Shown here: piece after piece, positions 2,931-61,065 of the stretch
How positions within the stretch are numbered: the stretch's first letter is position 1
Layout: every line of letters begins with the position of its first letter
Sequence record: PP456879.1
DNA length: 64,000 nucleotides
Direction: 5' to 3' (one strand)
Position numbers and translations under genes: made by a program
The notes under the pieces: generated by a model
The model's input: the letters and a program-made list of their open reading frames with translations, nothing else
Database searches by the model: none
What the model was told of the DNA's origin: nothing

Positions 2931-3260
2931 TTATCGATTAACTACACGATAATTATCAATAATAAACTCGATGTACTGTTCGACATCATGTAAGAAGCAG
3001 TTGTAACTATACCGATCAAGTTTATTTAAAGCTTCAGTTAGAACTGGTTCGATATAGATATTTATTTCAGCTATTGATGGAATCTCAACATACTTGTTTT
3101 CATATTCGGTAAGCTGCTCCTTTACCTTAGCCATTTGCTTTTTGTAAATGTATTCCATCGACCATTCTTTATAAATGGAACGTGCCCCATCAAAGAGATG
3201 GTAACCAAATGCAATACCACCAAGCACCAGAACACCAGTGGAAATAGTTGACATATTCAT
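2931..3260 (-). CDS. early membrane-anchored protein (N-terminal TM)
   Basis: 109 aa; ISTGVLVLGGIAFGYHLF hydrophobic segment; SD AAGGAG; monocistronic between the 3297 promoter and the 2899 terminator. Confidence 0.8.
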   Translation of the reverse strand: MNMSTISTGVLVLGGIAFGYHLFDGARSIYKEWSMEYIYKKQMAKVKEQLTEYENKYVEIPSIAEINIYIEPVLTEALNKLDRYSYNCFLHDVEQYIEFIIDNYRVVNR

Positions 3261-3296
3261 GACATATCTCCTTTTTTCAAGATTGAATTCACATTA

Positions 3297-3320
3297 GTAA
3301 TATACTGTTAAAATATGTTT
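3297..3320 (-). promoter_or_regulatory. phiKZ-type early promoter
   Basis: AAACATATTTTAACAG-TATATTAC. Confidence 0.78.
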
Positions 3321-3344
3321 GAATACAAAAAATAAAATATAAAG

Positions 3345-3360: not shown

Positions 3361-3388
3361 ACTTTATGGTGACTTTGTAAAAGACTTA

Positions 3389-6871: not shown

Positions 6872-7961
6872 CTCTTATGTTCACCCAGGGTCGTTAATCC
6901 TGAGCCGTTTACTTAAATGACTTTATAACCAGAATACTTTGGATTCTTGCTGTTAATTCGGTATGTTATTGTACCCTGTGATACTCCGAGAGCCTTAGCT
7001 GCATCGGCCTGGGATAAATAAACAACACCGTCCACTTCAAGTTTGTTTGAGTTAGTTGGCTTTATACTGCGTTTGTTATCCGCCAACTTTTTTCTGGTTT
7101 CTTCGGAATGTGTTTTACCGTAGAATGGATTACGTTCGCCTGTTCTCTGAGAAGCTATCTCCGACATCCTGGCTCTTGTCTCATCACTAGCTTTAATGCC
7201 AAGACGGTAAGTGTTACCCGTGTGTAACTCGGATAGAGCTACCTTAACTTCTTCTGTGTGAGTACGACCATACATCCCATTCTGCTCACCTGGTCGACCA
7301 TACTTTTCCTGACGAGCCTCGGCTCCAATCTCATCAAGTCTGATACGTATTGTATCACTCCGCTTCTCGATGATTTGTTCTTTGAGGTTATGCCTGGTTA
7401 AGTTATCACCACCCTTGGAGTGTCTACCAATATTAAGAAGGTTACCTTCTTCTTCATGCTTGGTTATCCACATCTGTTCGAGTGTAAATGCTGATTCCCG
7501 ACTTTCACAACGATAGTACTTTAACGAGAATCTTTCACCGTTATCGTATTCTTGTTGTAATGGGTAGTTATGGTGCTTGGAATTACTAAGGTCTCTGAAA
7601 TGTCGTTGAACGCGCTTAACTAAATCTCGCGCACTTCCGACATATACCTTTCCTTCTTTGGTGAATAGGCAATACACATAAGCTACGTCATTAATAACAC
7701 CCTCCTTATCTGGCGGAGTCATTAAGTAAACCGCTGCATGTCTCCATGCAGGACAGACTATATCACGATCTCTTAAAAAGAGACCCCTACCTTTTCGGAC
7801 CACTTGGTCCTACTCTACTCCCTTCCTCTTCTCAGAGTGGTTTCGATAGTCGTTAGGCATTTATGACCGTAGTCAATTTAGCACGGGATTGTCTCATAGA
7901 GAGTTTCCCCGTTTAGATAGGTTATTCGACTAGGATTGCTCCTAGAAGGCGCTAGTATTTA
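6872..7961 (-). mobile_element. self-splicing group I intron (T4 td-like) in thyA, 1090 nt
   Basis: Exon 1 ends in U (CAG CGU). The intron starts UAAAUACUAGCGC (P1 with U.G at the splice site) and ends ...GAACAUAAGAG (omega-G 6872). The core closely resembles T4 td: CTATCTAAACGGGGAAACTCTC..AGACAATCCCGTGCTAAATTG..ATAAATGCCTAACGACTATC..GATATAGTCTG..CTGCATGGAGACATGCAG..GATTAACGACC. P7 is GACTA/TAGTC (7847-7851, 7756-7760). Confidence 0.95.
6913..7722 (-). CDS. intron-encoded GIY-YIG homing endonuclease with NUMOD3 repeats and C-terminal HTH
   Basis: YVY-x9-YVG, R..H, E, LN catalytic motifs; NGMYGRTHTEE and NPFYGKTHSEETR (NUMOD3); YLSQADAAKALGVSQGTITYRI (HTH). First in-frame ATG downstream of the core is 7722; the track start (7803) lies inside the ribozyme core. 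Confidence 0.9.
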   Translation of the reverse strand: MTPPDKEGVINDVAYVYCLFTKEGKVYVGSARDLVKRVQRHFRDLSNSKHHNYPLQQEYDNGERFSLKYYRCESRESAFTLEQMWITKHEEEGNLLNIGRHSKGGDNLTRHNLKEQIIEKRSDTIRIRLDEIGAEARQEKYGRPGEQNGMYGRTHTEEVKVALSELHTGNTYRLGIKASDETRARMSEIASQRTGERNPFYGKTHSEETRKKLADNKRSIKPTNSNKLEVDGVVYLSQADAAKALGVSQGTITYRINSKNPKYSGYKVI

Positions 7962-9032
7962 ACGCTGGTAGAGCTGGCAGCTCAATGCACGTTTAGGAAC
8001 ACCAAGTTTATCCCACAGTGCGTGATCAGTTTCCGGTTGCGCACCTTCAAGGAAAATACGTTGAGCTTCAGTGTCGTTAAGTTTGACCCAGTCATACCGT
8101 TCTTCTAGCGTCAGTTCACGAGTCCAGAACTGAAAGAAGCTATGACATGGTGGGAGCGCCTGTTCATCAACGAGTTGCGGTGACCACGCACAAACGATGA
8201 TTCGACGGGAATCAGGGTTTGTCTTAAGTTGATCAATCACGTCTTGAATTTGATCAATACGACGTGTTACAACACAGCGGTCATTCTCCATACACGTACC
8301 AGGAATATCAACTACGAAGTTAAAGCCACGCTTCTCATAATCCACCCACTCATATTTAGGGATTACACGAGTGTCTTCAAGATCACGCCAAGTCTTACCG
8401 TAAACGGCACCTAGATCGCCCCCGATGAGTTTCAGAGGCTTAACTCCAAATAGCAATTTATATAGTCGTTTACCATATTCATATTTAATTAGTTCTGGTG
8501 TTACACTCTCATCGAAATCTATAGTAGATACTGCCAGCCATTGGCTAGTGTTAACACCAATTACATGCGTAGCATCAATATTAATGGTTGGATATTGATT
8601 CCAAAAGCTAGCTATCTCATCATCACTTAAAGAAGCTTCAAACTCATCTCTAGTTTGAATGATTACTTCATCATCTAAACAATGAAAATAAAGGGCAAAT
8701 GGGCCACCAACTTTCTTTAGAATAGCTGAGTCAAGCTCTTCTTGATTTAACTCACGATACATCGCGGTATTTGGTTTAACCCATTCATTCCAAATGCGTA
8801 CGCCATTTTCAATTAAATAATCTACACGAGTATCACCAGAAAGCATCCAGAACAATTCATGGATAACAGATGGAAGATGAATTTTCTTAGTAGTTACTAC
8901 GGGTAGAACGTTGTTACGTAAACTATAACGTTCTTGTTGACCAAACATGCTCTGAGTACCAGTACCAGTACGGTCACCTTTATGCACACCGTGTTCTTTA
9001 ACTAAACGAATTGAATTAAGATATTGTTCCAT
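7962..9032 (-). CDS. thyA: thymidylate synthase, exon 1 (with large insertions)
   Basis: DRTGTGT, PVVTTKKIHLPSVIHELFW, GDLGAVYG, NPDSRR, ALPPCH catalytic Cys, CQLYQR; the apparent TAA stop is the first intron triplet. Confidence 0.95.
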
Positions 9033-27172: not shown

Positions 27173-27349
27173 TTAATTATTAAAAGATAAATCATAATCA
27201 CTTTGTCTGCGATTCGGATTAACAGGATCAGGATATTTTCCAGTTTTGATAACTTCTTTTATAGCTCTAAAATCACGTTCTAGAAAATCTAGTTTTTTAA
27301 CTAACTCTTTTTCTAATTCTTTATTGAGTAGTCTTCTTAATTTGCTCAT
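27173..27349 (-). CDS. 58-aa coiled-coil protein (not in ORF track)
   Basis: MSKLRRLLNKELEKELVKKLDFLERDFRAIKEVIKTGKYPDPVNPNRRQSDYDLSFNN*; overlaps the end of 27321..27716. Confidence 0.62.
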   Translation of the reverse strand: MSKLRRLLNKELEKELVKKLDFLERDFRAIKEVIKTGKYPDPVNPNRRQSDYDLSFNN

Positions 27350-27716
27350 CTACGTATACTCTCACAATGAACCAATTGATTAGGCCAAAACCTTTTGGTG
27401 TGATGGTAATGTCATCTTTATATCCATTTTTAGTGATTACATTACGTAATACTTTAATTGCTTCAGGTGGAATAAGATTAGCATTACCGGTAACACTATA
27501 CTCGAAATAATAACCTACACCTGGTAAATAACCTGATGCAATCTGGTTAGTACCTGTGATATTACTAACGTGTTGGAAGTCACTAAAAGCATTCTTGTAG
27601 AATAACAAAATATTAGGAATTACTTCATCCCTAATAGTAGAACTAGTAATGGCATCCGCCGATGGAAAATAAGGTACTAATTCATCTGTTACATTGGTGC
27701 TATTAATATCGGACAT
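27321..27716 (-). CDS. hypothetical early protein
   Basis: 131 aa, SD GAGGA, first gene after the 27763 promoter. Confidence 0.75.
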   Translation of the reverse strand: MSDINSTNVTDELVPYFPSADAITSSTIRDEVIPNILLFYKNAFSDFQHVSNITGTNQIASGYLPGVGYYFEYSVTGNANLIPPEAIKVLRNVITKNGYKDDITITPKGFGLINWFIVRVYVDEQIKKTTQ

Positions 27717-27762
27717 AATCTTTTCCTCATTATAAAAGGATAAATATCTTTATGGTAATCCT

Positions 27763-27786
27763 GTAATATAGATTTAAATTAATTTA
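27763..27786 (-). promoter_or_regulatory. phiKZ-type early promoter
   Basis: TAAATTAATTTAAATC-TATATTAC. Confidence 0.78.
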
Positions 27787-27799
27787 TAATGAATGGCAT

Positions 27800-27824
27800 A
27801 AAGGAGCCCCTGGTGGGCTCCTTT
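27800..27824. terminator. terminator-like hairpin
   Basis: AAAGGAGCCC-loop-GGGCTCCTTT; no annotated gene ends here on either strand. Confidence 0.6.
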
Positions 27825-27836
27825 AATGTAATAGGT

Positions 27837-28000
27837 CCGACCCCTATCTAGAGGTCGGTGAGTAGCAAGGCACCGTAGTTGGGGTTCGTGTCGTTCCTGA
27901 CGATACTTTAGTACCCCGGTTTATTTACGACTGGATCACCCCCTTAAAGTGCAGTGCGTTTTACGCAAACTGCCTTGCTCTATATCATTGCACTGTGCGT
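27837..28000. ncRNA. candidate structured non-coding RNA (multi-helix, possible pseudoknot)
   Basis: ORF-free, GC-enriched island. Helices: AGCAAGGCA 27864-72 / TGCCTTGCT 27971-79; AGTGCAGTG 27948-56 / CATTGCACT 27986-94; CCGACC..GGTCGG; GGGG..CCCC; GTGTCGT/ACGATAC; CCGGT/ACTGG; GCAGT-GCGT/ACGC-ACTGC. Confidence 0.5.
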
Positions 28001-28066
28001 ATTTTTATTCGTTAGCTAATCTTATGACTTAGAGTTATATTTACATACCCCTTAAGGAAAAATGCA

Positions 28067-30178
28067 ATGATAGACTCATTTAGGAAGCTAATGGGCTCGC
28101 TATCAATTACTGAAACTGATCAAGAAATTATCATCAGTGGTTTTGATGGTGCTGCATTCATTAGAGATATTAACAAGTATTGGCGAACCACTAAATTAGC
28201 TACGCAGTTATTTAACACGGTTAGTCGTCGTAGTATTTCATTTTATAAATTCTTTGCTCCTGAAATATATTACATGCTAGAAGCAGTAAAGAATTATAGA
28301 AGTAGATACATCTCTATTAAAACTGTTAATGCCATCCGTGAAGCAATGCTTCAATATACCTGGTTAAAAAATACTCGTCCTGTAGATACCAACTCTGTAC
28401 CAGGTAGACTCAATTTCAAGATGTTAGACAAATTGACATTTACACCAGATGAGTCTCAAAAAGCTTATTTTGAAAATTATAATTATCGAATTGACCAGTA
28501 TGGTTTACGTGGTGATATTGTTGCAGGTAAACCTGGTACTGGTAAGACATTCATGACGATGGCTATTGCTGAAATGGTTGAGTCGGATATCATTATAGTT
28601 GTTTGTGAAAAGAAGTCTATTGATCTAATATGGAAGCCATCTATTATTGAGATGTATAAGGAAAGACAAAAAGTATGGTCGACCATTGATGATAAAGCCT
28701 ACAACGGTCAAAGAATACTTATATCCCATTACCAGGCGCAAGATAAAATAATTGATCTATTAAGAAGCGGTATATTCAAAGGTAAGAACATTACGGTGAT
28801 TCTGGATGAATCACACAATATGAACGATCCTAATTCTGCACAATCTCTTAAGTTCCAGCAAATATGTTTTATGTCTAACTCTAATAACAGATTATTAGCG
28901 TCAGGTACCCCTGTTAAAGCACTTGGTTCTGAATTAGTAAGTGCATTAAGAGTATTAGACGATCTCTTCACCAATGAGGTTGAAGAACGTTTTAAGAAAG
29001 CATTTGGAAAAGAGACACAGAAAGGATTAGATATTGTCCAACATCGCTTTGGGTTAATTGCGTACGTCATTGAAAAGAAAGATACTGAGGTTTTACCACC
29101 GAGGATAAAAGCGTATCGTATCAAGATACCAAATGGATCACAGTATACTCTTAATGCCATTAAACGTGATTGTGAAGCTTTTATTAGAGAACGTGTAAAG
29201 TTCTATGCTGCGCGCCGACCAGAAGATGAGAAGTATTGGGCTAAACTAATGGCGATACACGAGAACTCTCTTAAGACCCAGGCGCAGAAAGATGGTTTCG
29301 CTCGCTATAAGAATTTGATTAAAATAATTCAGAAGAATCAAGACCCGCGATACATTGGTGAAGAAATTAAAGAATCTAACCAATATGAAAAAATGTTTAT
29401 AGAGCCAACTTTACCTCGTAATGAAATAGCTGCTTTTAGAGATATTAAATCAGTTATAAAATACGTTATGCTAAAGATACAAGGTGAATGTTTGGGAAGG
29501 GTTTTAGGTGCTAAACGCATTCAGTGCCATGTGGACATGGTACCGTATATTGACTGGGTTGGTATCACTGAATCAACTATGAAGAAAACGATTGCATTTA
29601 CATCGTTTGTTGAGGTTGTTGATACTGTTGATAAGTACACCAATAAATTAGGTATGCATCCGGCGGTGGTGTATGGTAAAACCAATGACAATTTACCTCA
29701 AATAATCAGTAGATTTGAGAAAGACCCTAAATTAAATCCATTGGTAGCTACATATGCTTCCCTTTCAACAGCGGTCCGTATGACGATGGCTGATACTATG
29801 GTGACAATTAATTCACCGTTTAGGCATTACATTCTAGAACAAGCTATTGCTCGAATTTACCGTAAAGGTCAGGATTCACAAACAGTCGTATATCAATGTA
29901 CTCTCGATACAGAAGATGAACCGAATATCTCAACAAGGTCAGATGACATTCTAAAATGGAGTCAGGCAATGGTTGAAGCTATTATGGGTATTAAATCTCC
30001 ATTTGAGATCACAGAGTCATTAGAAAGTTATGTTGATAAAAATAATAATTTTGATGAAAATAAAATCATTTATCAGATGCTAAAAGAATCATTTGAGAAG
30101 TATGATATCGCAATTGATTTTAATGACTTTGATACACGTATGTATAAACCATATCAGCCCGCATATATGCGGTTTTAA
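28067..30178 (+). CDS. SF2 (DEAD/SNF2-like) helicase, phiKZ gp203-like
   Basis: GKPGTGKT, ILDESH, ASGTP, STAVRMT, QAIARIYRKGQ; SD AAGGA. Confidence 0.9.
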   Translation: MIDSFRKLMGSLSITETDQEIIISGFDGAAFIRDINKYWRTTKLATQLFNTVSRRSISFYKFFAPEIYYMLEAVKNYRSRYISIKTVNAIREAMLQYTWLKNTRPVDTNSVPGRLNFKMLDKLTFTPDESQKAYFENYNYRIDQYGLRGDIVAGKPGTGKTFMTMAIAEMVESDIIIVVCEKKSIDLIWKPSIIEMYKERQKVWSTIDDKAYNGQRILISHYQAQDKIIDLLRSGIFKGKNITVILDESHNMNDPNSAQSLKFQQICFMSNSNNRLLASGTPVKALGSELVSALRVLDDLFTNEVEERFKKAFGKETQKGLDIVQHRFGLIAYVIEKKDTEVLPPRIKAYRIKIPNGSQYTLNAIKRDCEAFIRERVKFYAARRPEDEKYWAKLMAIHENSLKTQAQKDGFARYKNLIKIIQKNQDPRYIGEEIKESNQYEKMFIEPTLPRNEIAAFRDIKSVIKYVMLKIQGECLGRVLGAKRIQCHVDMVPYIDWVGITESTMKKTIAFTSFVEVVDTVDKYTNKLGMHPAVVYGKTNDNLPQIISRFEKDPKLNPLVATYASLSTAVRMTMADTMVTINSPFRHYILEQAIARIYRKGQDSQTVVYQCTLDTEDEPNISTRSDDILKWSQAMVEAIMGIKSPFEITESLESYVDKNNNFDENKIIYQMLKESFEKYDIAIDFNDFDTRMYKPYQPAYMRF

Positions 30179-61044: not shown

Positions 61045-61065
61045 AAATAAAAAAAAAGACATAAT

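Follow-up and report, generated by a model that had tools for sequence, protein, structure and literature searches.

The stretch of DNA that we analysed (the window; 64,000 nucleotides) comes from Pseudomonas phage phiKZ and is read here in reverse complement, window position x corresponding to phiKZ coordinate 240834 - x. Within it, a 350-nt spacer separates PHIKZ204 (27321-27716, minus strand) from PHIKZ203, which encodes a DEAD/DEAH helicase and runs in the other direction (28067-30178, plus strand). The phiKZ records AF399011 and NC_004629 contain no annotated features within this spacer, and we found no open reading frame of at least 30 amino acids in it, in agreement with a first-pass annotation of the window that had described about 350 nt without an ORF between divergent genes. 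The spacer contains a GC island (51-55% versus a background of approximately 32%) and folds more stably than its dinucleotide shuffles on either strand, with z values of -4.95 for the minus strand and -4.37 for the plus strand and none of 200 shuffles equalling the native sequence. The predicted fold of the minus-strand RNA has an energy of -71.1 kcal/mol.

A scan of positions 27600-28200 against Rfam 15, proposed in the first-pass annotation as a check, gave no match at the gathering threshold. At E<=10, only unrelated families appeared at chance level, the top score being 20 bits against cut-offs of 41-75. The families tested included riboswitches, self-cleaving ribozymes, 6S RNA and known phage RNAs, none of which matched, and ARAGORN found no tRNA or tmRNA genes over the whole window. 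The element had been described as an unannotated, multi-helix phage non-coding RNA of no recognised class; it is conserved, and neither Rfam nor ARAGORN returned anything relevant, in keeping with that description. Our analysis places the following features in the spacer, and in phiKZ coordinates the small RNA lies on the plus strand at approximately 212,854-213,037.

27797-27980, minus strand: whole inferred small RNA, approximately 184 nt, its 5' end taken from the TATAG motif and its 3' end from the terminator
27980-27989, minus strand: promoter-like motif AATGATATAG, ending 1 nt before P1
27973-27979, minus strand: 5' strand of helix P1 (RNA AGCAAGG), pairing with 27864-27870
27952-27972, minus strand: hairpin P4 (RNA CAG-UUU-GCG-UAAAA-CGC-A-CUG), which covaries
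27931-27947, minus strand: invariant core (RNA 5'-UUAAGGGGGUGAUCCAG-3'), complementary to the 16S rRNA 3' end CUGGAUCACCUCCUUA(A)
27874-27929, minus strand: P2/P3 domain, with CGUA/UACG (27926-27929 with 27874-27877) and GGGGU/ACCCC (27913-27917 with 27881-27885)
27888-27906, minus strand: apical hairpin P3, with the loop CAGGA in phiKZ
27864-27870, minus strand: 3' strand of P1 (RNA CCUUGCU), which closes the molecule
27838-27859, minus strand: extra hairpin of the phiKZ type (RNA CCGACC-UCUAGAUAGG-GGUCGG), between P1 and the terminator
27797-27821, minus strand: intrinsic terminator, GGAGCCC-ACCAG-GGGCUCC followed by UUUAUG (hairpin 27803-27821, tail to 27797)

Our searches of phiKZ-like jumbo phages and of metagenomes yielded 48 homologues of this small RNA, 43 of which are distinct. 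Among the phages that carry it are Phikzvirus, PA1C-like phages, PhiPA3, Phabio, 201phi2-1, Viktualia and pPa_SNUABM_DT01, and further copies lie on many jumbo-phage contigs of 230-325 kb from IMG/VR and metagenomes. The phage pPa_SNUABM_DT01 is an isolated, Noxifer-related phage of P. aeruginosa that encodes both phiKZ-type RNA polymerases (PMC8541153). In distant blastn searches, the spacer matched in part, at 72-85% identity, to PA1C-like phages, PhiPA3, Phabio, 201phi2-1 and Viktualia, in which the intergenic DNA is otherwise unalignable with that of phiKZ, and the family was widened from this blastn set by pattern scans, an HMM and a covariance model. Among the matches listed by the loose pattern scans, most were chance matches, and a loose scan of bacterial genome contigs yielded no family member among the matches listed, of which there were at least 120. 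The model R1 matches the window at 27828-27984 on the minus strand with 32.8 bits (E 2.6e-7). The homologues have in common a TATAG or TATG by P1, the 5' hairpin P4, P2 around a GNRA-capped P3 and a terminator of the phiKZ type. We divided them into group A, the phiKZ-type phages, and group B, the Noxifer-like group. A weak model match of 18.7 bits was seen at 3142-3323 (minus strand) of the 136-kb contig L171 (IMGVR_UViG_2513237141_000003); this locus combines a canonical AAAGGAGGUGAUCCAGUG with a terminator that ends in a U tail, lacks a matching P1 and may be either a distant relative or an ordinary ribosome-binding site.

The loci of the distant blastn relatives follow a common plan, and all four Watson-Crick pairs could be seen by eye at one position of the closing helix. 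RNAalifold applied to plain MAFFT alignments missed P2/P3 or gave spurious pairing between the core and P1, and we therefore used hand-assigned helices and a covariance model, based on six sequences of group B and a structure drawn by hand, with which all members were aligned on the minus strand. The resulting alignment comprised 23 distinct sequences of group B. Of its pair cells, 92.9% were paired, versus 29-41% when the partners were slid by 1-3 columns, double changes were present in 26 of 37 pairs, the covariation score was 0.566 versus 0.06-0.09, and none of 500 shuffles reached any observed measure, although all of these statistics lean towards the proposed structure because the alignment was fitted to the model. 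A 15-sequence alignment gave the same covariation picture, and P1, P2, P4 and the terminator each have many independent compensatory variants that are visible also in the raw sequence. As grounds for giving up its RNA element, the first-pass annotation had named the absence of a discrete transcript together with a lack of conservation or compensatory change in related phages; conservation and compensatory change were both found.

The individual helices bear out much of what had been drawn from the phiKZ sequence. A long-range 9-bp helix proposed at 27864-72/27971-79 is real and covaries as P1, reduced to the 7 bp between 27864-70 and 27973-79. The eight distinct P1 sequences of group A contain 61 Watson-Crick, 2 G.U and no A.C pairs, and in group B the helix is 100% paired, with 6 G.U and no A.C pairs. 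The proposed GCAG..CTGC hairpin at 27952-73 corresponds to P4 and also covaries: in group B this second helix is changed on both sides in 4 of 4 pairs, and group A has three distinct inner-stem sequences. Covariation in relatives likewise supports two more of the proposed hairpins, CCGACC/GGTCGG (27838-59) and GTGTCGT/ACGATAC (27888-27906), the latter inside GGGGT/ACCCC. The former is the extra hairpin of the phiKZ type, which has eight distinct stem sequences in nine phages, with 54 Watson-Crick, 5 G.U and no A.C pairs on the minus strand; it is not present in group B, and the phiKZ-type group also has a different P2 interior. The counterparts of P2b covary as GAUAC/GUAUC, GGUAC/GUACC, GUACUC/GAGUAC and CUAGCGA/UCGCUGG. 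Other parts of the proposed architecture were not confirmed. A second 9-bp helix (27948-56/27986-94) was seen in phiKZ only: in the seven other relatives of group A that we compared, the best complementarity is 4-8 nt in other registers. The pseudoknot that it was thought to create by crossing the long helix is not supported, and the 3' arm of the crossing helix would lie 5' of the putative start of transcription. The GGTGA/TCACC pairing lacks conservation, and the switch-like competition that had been described between a hairpin and the long helices is not confirmed, P4 and P1 being compatible if P1 has 7 bp. In the structure that is left, P4 and the bulged P2, with P3 at its tip, flank a linker of approximately 20-25 nt that is free of conserved helices.

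We next consider which strand carries the RNA. A G.U pair on the true strand reads as A.C on the opposite strand, and in group B the ratio of G.U to A.C on the minus strand was 28:12 overall and 16:1 in P1 and the terminator, where the register is unambiguous. For the hand-assigned helices of group A, the ratio was 13:5. Some positions count against the minus strand: in the P2/P3 domain of phiKZ itself, two G.U pairs of the plus strand become A.C mismatches on the minus strand, and one inner P1 position reads better on the plus strand. Within the same domain, a U-A pair of phiKZ is replaced in the sequence SL2 by U.G, as read on the minus strand. An earlier impression that G.U wobbles favour the plus strand therefore holds for two pairs of phiKZ and is reversed by the balance across the family. 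Consistent with the family-wide counts, the minus-strand RNA is stabler than the plus-strand RNA in 21 of 26 members, by a mean margin of 6.3 kcal/mol, and a GNRA-capped P3 with a stem of at least 4 bp is found in 24 of the 43 distinct members on the minus strand and in none on the plus strand (the tetraloops seen are GGGA, GUGA, GAGA and GCGA).

The 3' end of the RNA has the same polarity. In every homologue, TTTATG stands 3' of the terminator hairpin on the minus strand. ONT-cappable-seq of 201phi2-1 mapped a 3' end at 229,201, where the terminator is strong in vivo (PMC11512511); this coordinate corresponds to position 1461 of our 201phi2-1 locus (L011), 8 nt past the hairpin, which is the exact end of the predicted minus-strand RNA. 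No minus-strand gene lies upstream in phiKZ or PA1C, so the transcription unit ended by the terminator is the RNA itself. On contig L007, two minus-strand units stand in tandem; each is preceded by a repeat of approximately 35 nt that ends in TATAG, and each has its own terminator. Together, the G.U/A.C counts, the GNRA loops, the terminator polarity and the 3' end of 201phi2-1 point to the minus strand as the RNA strand.

At the other end, transcription probably starts at or near G27980, the G of TATAG, as judged from the sequence. TATAG adjoins P1 in every group A member, including the 18 of 25 loci that were found through helicase homology alone, and group B has TATG at the same position, also adjoining P1. 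The core of phiKZ late promoters is T-3ATG+1, and these promoters are reported to need TATG strictly (PMC7598289); the phiKZ-type members carry TATAG and not the strict late-promoter TATG. Elsewhere in the window, AATGATATAG occurs at chance level and without enrichment, and its function as a promoter is therefore putative.

The orphan terminator hairpin that the first-pass annotation had noticed (27803-21) is real and has the standard phiKZ form, and in group B 11 of the 12 terminator pairs show double changes. The fallback reading attached to it, a minus-strand sRNA of about 200 nt that ends at this hairpin, is the one that the evidence favours, with a length of approximately 184 nt. A GC-rich hairpin directly followed by (T)TTATG is a common terminator form on both strands of the window (for example, at 3363, 4039, 6563, 12295, 19035, 32651, 41673 and 61087 on the plus strand and at 61064, 34459, 32628 and 4015 on the minus strand); phiKZ terminators in general appear to have this form, and the TATG inside this tail is also the late-promoter core.

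Several smaller observations concern the terminator and its surroundings. In phage vB_PaM_W10-2 (L344), the terminator loop that aligns with window 27810-27814 reads CUGGU and the phiKZ loop ACCAG; the stem is identical, and one loop is the reverse complement of the other, that is, the hairpin loop is inverted. Used as a blastn query, the PA1C element matches three places in each PA1C-like genome (MK599315 and relatives) and five in HPP-Temi, and the shared terminator is a plausible candidate for the repeated part. On L007, a second short unit lies directly 3' of the small RNA (approximately 2941-3070, plus strand of the contig), with a near-identical upstream repeat of approximately 35 nt that ends in TATATAG, approximately 70 nt of unrelated sequence and a terminator with UCUUUUA; it looks like another small RNA gene in tandem. 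Between the phiKZ small RNA terminator and the start of gp204 lies an early-promoter-like TATATTAC (27764-27771, minus strand, within AAATCTATATTACAGG), and the same arrangement, the terminator followed by ..TCTATATTAC, is found in Phabio, HPP-Temi, L468, L471 and L474.

The genes around the unit differ between phages. In the phiKZ-type phages, it always lies within approximately 1.6 kb of the helicase start, co-directional with the helicase in PhiPA3 and L007 and pointing away from it in phiKZ, PA1C, HPP-Temi, Phabio, Viktualia and L050. In group B, the unit has no adjacent helicase and stands among unrelated co-directional genes, near paralogues of virion proteins and an NAD-dependent ligase. 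One possible explanation for the proximity to the helicase in the phiKZ-type phages is that the element acts in cis, either as a leader or attenuator of the minus-strand gene downstream (gp204 in phiKZ) or as a cis-antisense regulator of plus transcripts entering the helicase. The phiKZ small RNA does lie upstream of gp204 and in the same direction, and Putzeys et al. report many short '5'UTR-derived' phiKZ RNAs from premature termination. However, the gene downstream of the unit varies between phages, PA1C has no co-directional gene after it, and in phiKZ the early-promoter-like motif intervenes between the terminator and gp204. In addition, the orientation to the helicase flips, group B units are not near any helicase, and the homologous terminator of 201phi2-1 is strong. 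The unit thus has no fixed place and orientation before one kind of gene, and we consider action in cis improbable. A ribozyme-like or riboswitch-like element, as the first-pass annotation had suggested, finds neither a family match nor a conserved downstream gene.

The same gene arrangements bear on the plus strand, which the first-pass annotation had read as the 5' leader of the helicase: with the orientation flipping, and with the Noxifer-like group having no adjacent helicase, this assignment is not supported. Our own initial reading was similar, namely a plus-strand helicase leader or look-alike of the 16S 3' end, and was dropped on the strand tests (terminator, 3' end, stability, G.U/A.C and GNRA). 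In its fuller form, a functional plus strand would mimic the 16S 3' end (helix 45 and the anti-Shine-Dalgarno tail, GGAUCACCCCCUU) and act either as the leader of the helicase or as a decoy that draws off factors recognising the 16S tail. The plus-strand CAAGGCACCGUAG...CUGGAUCACCCCCUUA is indeed close to 16S CAAGGUAACCGUAG...UUGGAUCACCUCCUUA, the plus strand is also well folded, and phiKZ has the two G.U pairs on that strand. These points are set against the G.U/A.C counts of the whole family, the 24 to 0 distribution of GNRA loops, the terminator polarity, the mapped 201phi2-1 3' end, the tandem minus-strand units of L007 and the lack of a fixed orientation relative to the helicase; moreover, the CCCCC of the plus strand would be a damaged anti-Shine-Dalgarno sequence. 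A functional plus strand is therefore highly improbable. By contrast, the minus-strand unit has its own 3' intrinsic terminator, is non-coding and keeps its structure through compensatory change, and we conclude with high confidence that the spacer holds a stand-alone gene for a conserved, structured small non-coding RNA on the minus strand of the window.

The most conspicuous part of this RNA is a feature that the first-pass annotation had not mentioned. The sole long invariant block of the family, AGG(G/A)GGUGAUCCAG, is located between P4 and P2, and the consensus structure that covariation supports leaves it unpaired. Its sequence is complementary to the 16S 3' end (...GGUUGGAUCACCUCCUUA, taken from E. 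coli rrsH) and amounts to an extended Shine-Dalgarno sequence of 14-16 nt, and its conservation starts and stops where the complementarity to the 16S tail starts and stops. One base within it varies: most members have G, and Phabio, L332, L333, L467, L468, L470, L471, L474 and L481 have A. Because this base faces the U of CCUCC, A-U alternates with G.U, which is the pattern expected if pairing to this U is what is maintained. The predicted duplexes between the core and the 16S tail have 16-20 bp and energies of -26.6 to -35.8 kcal/mol, several-fold stronger than ordinary Shine-Dalgarno pairing. Apart from a single A-to-G difference, the core is also essentially identical to AAGGAGGTGATCCAGCC, the universal reverse primer for 16S genes.

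The invariance of the core is not an artefact of search patterns that contained it, because it holds also in sets that were fetched without it. A metagenome scan with patterns for the P1 flanks, in which the core was not used, returned 13 loci, and all 13 have the core; of 25 helicase loci collected by protein homology, 18 carry the unit no more than 3 kb upstream of the helicase. A query with a single helicase protein found phiKZ itself only. A sponge for RsmA/CsrA, another role that we considered, is unlikely, because the P3 loops are varied GNRA tetraloops with no conserved GGA and most cores read GGGGGUGA.

Complementarity to the 16S tail could also mark an ordinary ribosome-binding site, and we therefore looked for a start codon. 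None is present 4-13 nt downstream of the core in 36 of 39 members, which speaks against a small ORF behind it. The core thus has the Shine-Dalgarno complementarity of a true translation initiation region and lacks its start codon, making it a Shine-Dalgarno-like docking sequence without a translation start. When members were folded as single sequences, the mean unpaired probability was 0.44 for the core versus 0.37 for the whole RNA, and the G-run was often paired, as in the minimum-energy fold of phiKZ, in which it pairs with ACCCC. These folds count against an accessible core, and its putative accessibility is therefore that of the consensus structure.

On these grounds, we propose that the small RNA is a Shine-Dalgarno decoy without a start codon that would pair with the anti-Shine-Dalgarno sequence of host 30S subunits, a reading to which we give an even chance. 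A more specific version, slightly more tentative, is that it is a dedicated, structured anti-anti-Shine-Dalgarno RNA that would pair with the 3'-terminal 14-19 nt of host 16S rRNA and thereby reprogram, park or protect small subunits. Under this proposal, transcription would start at the TATAG or TATG motif and stop at the standard phiKZ terminator; in the covarying fold, P1 closes the RNA, and P4 and P2/P3 flank the linker that carries the core. The core would then pair with the anti-Shine-Dalgarno tail of free 30S subunits or of 70S ribosomes, much more strongly than any mRNA could. Because the small RNA has no start codon, the mRNA-docking site would be occupied without initiation, and the decoy would compete with mRNAs for docking, so that initiation dependent on Shine-Dalgarno sequences would be lowered or redirected. 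Alternatively, the small RNA may park 30S subunits or shield the 16S 3' end during infection; degradation of 30S subunits by RNase R reportedly begins at this end (PMC10901742). A decoy acting stoichiometrically would require very high abundance of the RNA.

It is also possible, with a lower probability than the decoy proposal, that the same minus-strand RNA uses its core to bind a protein or to seed pairing with another RNA, such as a phage or host mRNA with CCUCC or CCCCC, and that the likeness to Shine-Dalgarno sequences is coincidental or was inherited from an antisense copy of the 16S 3' end. Most members carry GGGGG and not the perfect GGAGG, a preference that would be unexpected if maximal pairing to 16S rRNA were the sole constraint. 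In phiKZ and PA1C only, a second stretch (CUACGGU-GCCUUG, window 27864-27878, minus strand) resembles the complement of 16S CUACGGUUACCUUG, just 5' of helix 45; 1 of 500 shuffles scores as high, and in PA1C the likeness reaches on to ACGACU. This second stretch may be a trace of an origin from an antisense rDNA fragment, which would hint at descent and not design, but it was not significant in the other nine members tested. As for another RNA target, ACCCCUUAAGGA in the leader of the helicase could pair with UUAAGGGG of the small RNA; this match is lost in HPP-Temi. A protein target has no known candidate. The coincidence of the core bounds with the complementarity to the accessible 16S tail, and the restriction of the variable position to A or G, both of which pair with U, argue instead for the 16S tail as the partner, and we favour the decoy proposal. 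The helicase 5' leader also contains a conserved ACCCCTTAAGGA (window 28047-28058, plus strand; approximately 1680-1691 in L002), which is altered in HPP-Temi. It includes the self-complementary CCTTAAGG, which overlaps the ribosome-binding site, and could also pair with UUAAGGGG.

In its proposed working principle, the small RNA is closest to Shine-Dalgarno sequences, anti-16S oligonucleotides and, by analogy, 6S RNA, and it belongs to none of these classes. Shine-Dalgarno sequences and synthetic anti-16S oligonucleotides share with it the 16S 3' target and the mode of pairing. Unlike the former, the small RNA has 14-19 nt of complementarity, far longer than a real Shine-Dalgarno sequence, and no start codon. 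Oligonucleotides complementary to the 16S 3' end reportedly block initiation (work attributed to Taniguchi and Weissmann in 1978 and to Jayaraman et al. in 1981); the small RNA differs from them in being natural, phage-encoded and part of a conserved folded RNA, and an initiation block by it is predicted from its sequence. 6S RNA mimics the nucleic-acid ligand of a large machine and thereby sequesters RNA polymerase. The likeness lies in a structured decoy that shows the docking signal of a cellular machine; the machine is a different one (the 30S subunit versus RNA polymerase), the two RNAs have no similarity in sequence or structure, and there is no Rfam match. OLE RNA resembles the 16S side and binds a ribosomal protein, whereas the small RNA is the complement of the 16S tail and has no homology to OLE. 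What the small RNA shares with OLE RNA and bS21, and with ribosome-associated non-coding RNAs, is a tie to the anti-Shine-Dalgarno region or the small subunit (PMC12054373).

Neither this locus nor its structure nor a complementarity to 16S rRNA is mentioned in the main texts of the papers that report transcriptomes and Grad-seq of phiKZ and 201phi2-1 (PMC10914365, PMC11512511 and PMC8545117), and the RNA candidates presented there sit elsewhere, upstream of gp221, gp302, p40, gp297/298 and gp182/gp277. The small RNA may be among the 17 phiKZ or 11 201phi2-1 candidates of their supplementary tables. It resembles the '5'UTR-derived' and intergenic RNAs that ONT-cappable-seq and Grad-seq found in these same phages, in which a start site is closely followed by a strong terminator. 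Our literature search found no description of a phage RNA complementary to 16S rRNA, or of the core sequence.

The gene accounts for the orphan terminator and the GC island of the spacer, in a genome that has been studied intensively, and its product founds a new structured RNA family, with clear covariation, that spans several jumbo-phage genera. phiKZ is the model nucleus-forming jumbo phage and a candidate for phage therapy, and, to our knowledge, the players known so far in its takeover of translation are proteins. The complementarity of the core to 16S rRNA gives a testable hypothesis of control over host ribosomes at the level of RNA. If this is true, the small RNA would be, as far as we know, the first natural trans-acting RNA shown to target the anti-Shine-Dalgarno sequence, and a ribosomal counterpart of 6S RNA. 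The strong terminators of the family and its compact, putative 30S-binding module could serve as parts for synthetic biology.

A second structured RNA was seen elsewhere in the window: positions 7734-7971 (minus strand) contain a group I intron, which matches the full length of the Rfam model RF00028 with 69.4 bits (E 1.6e-15).
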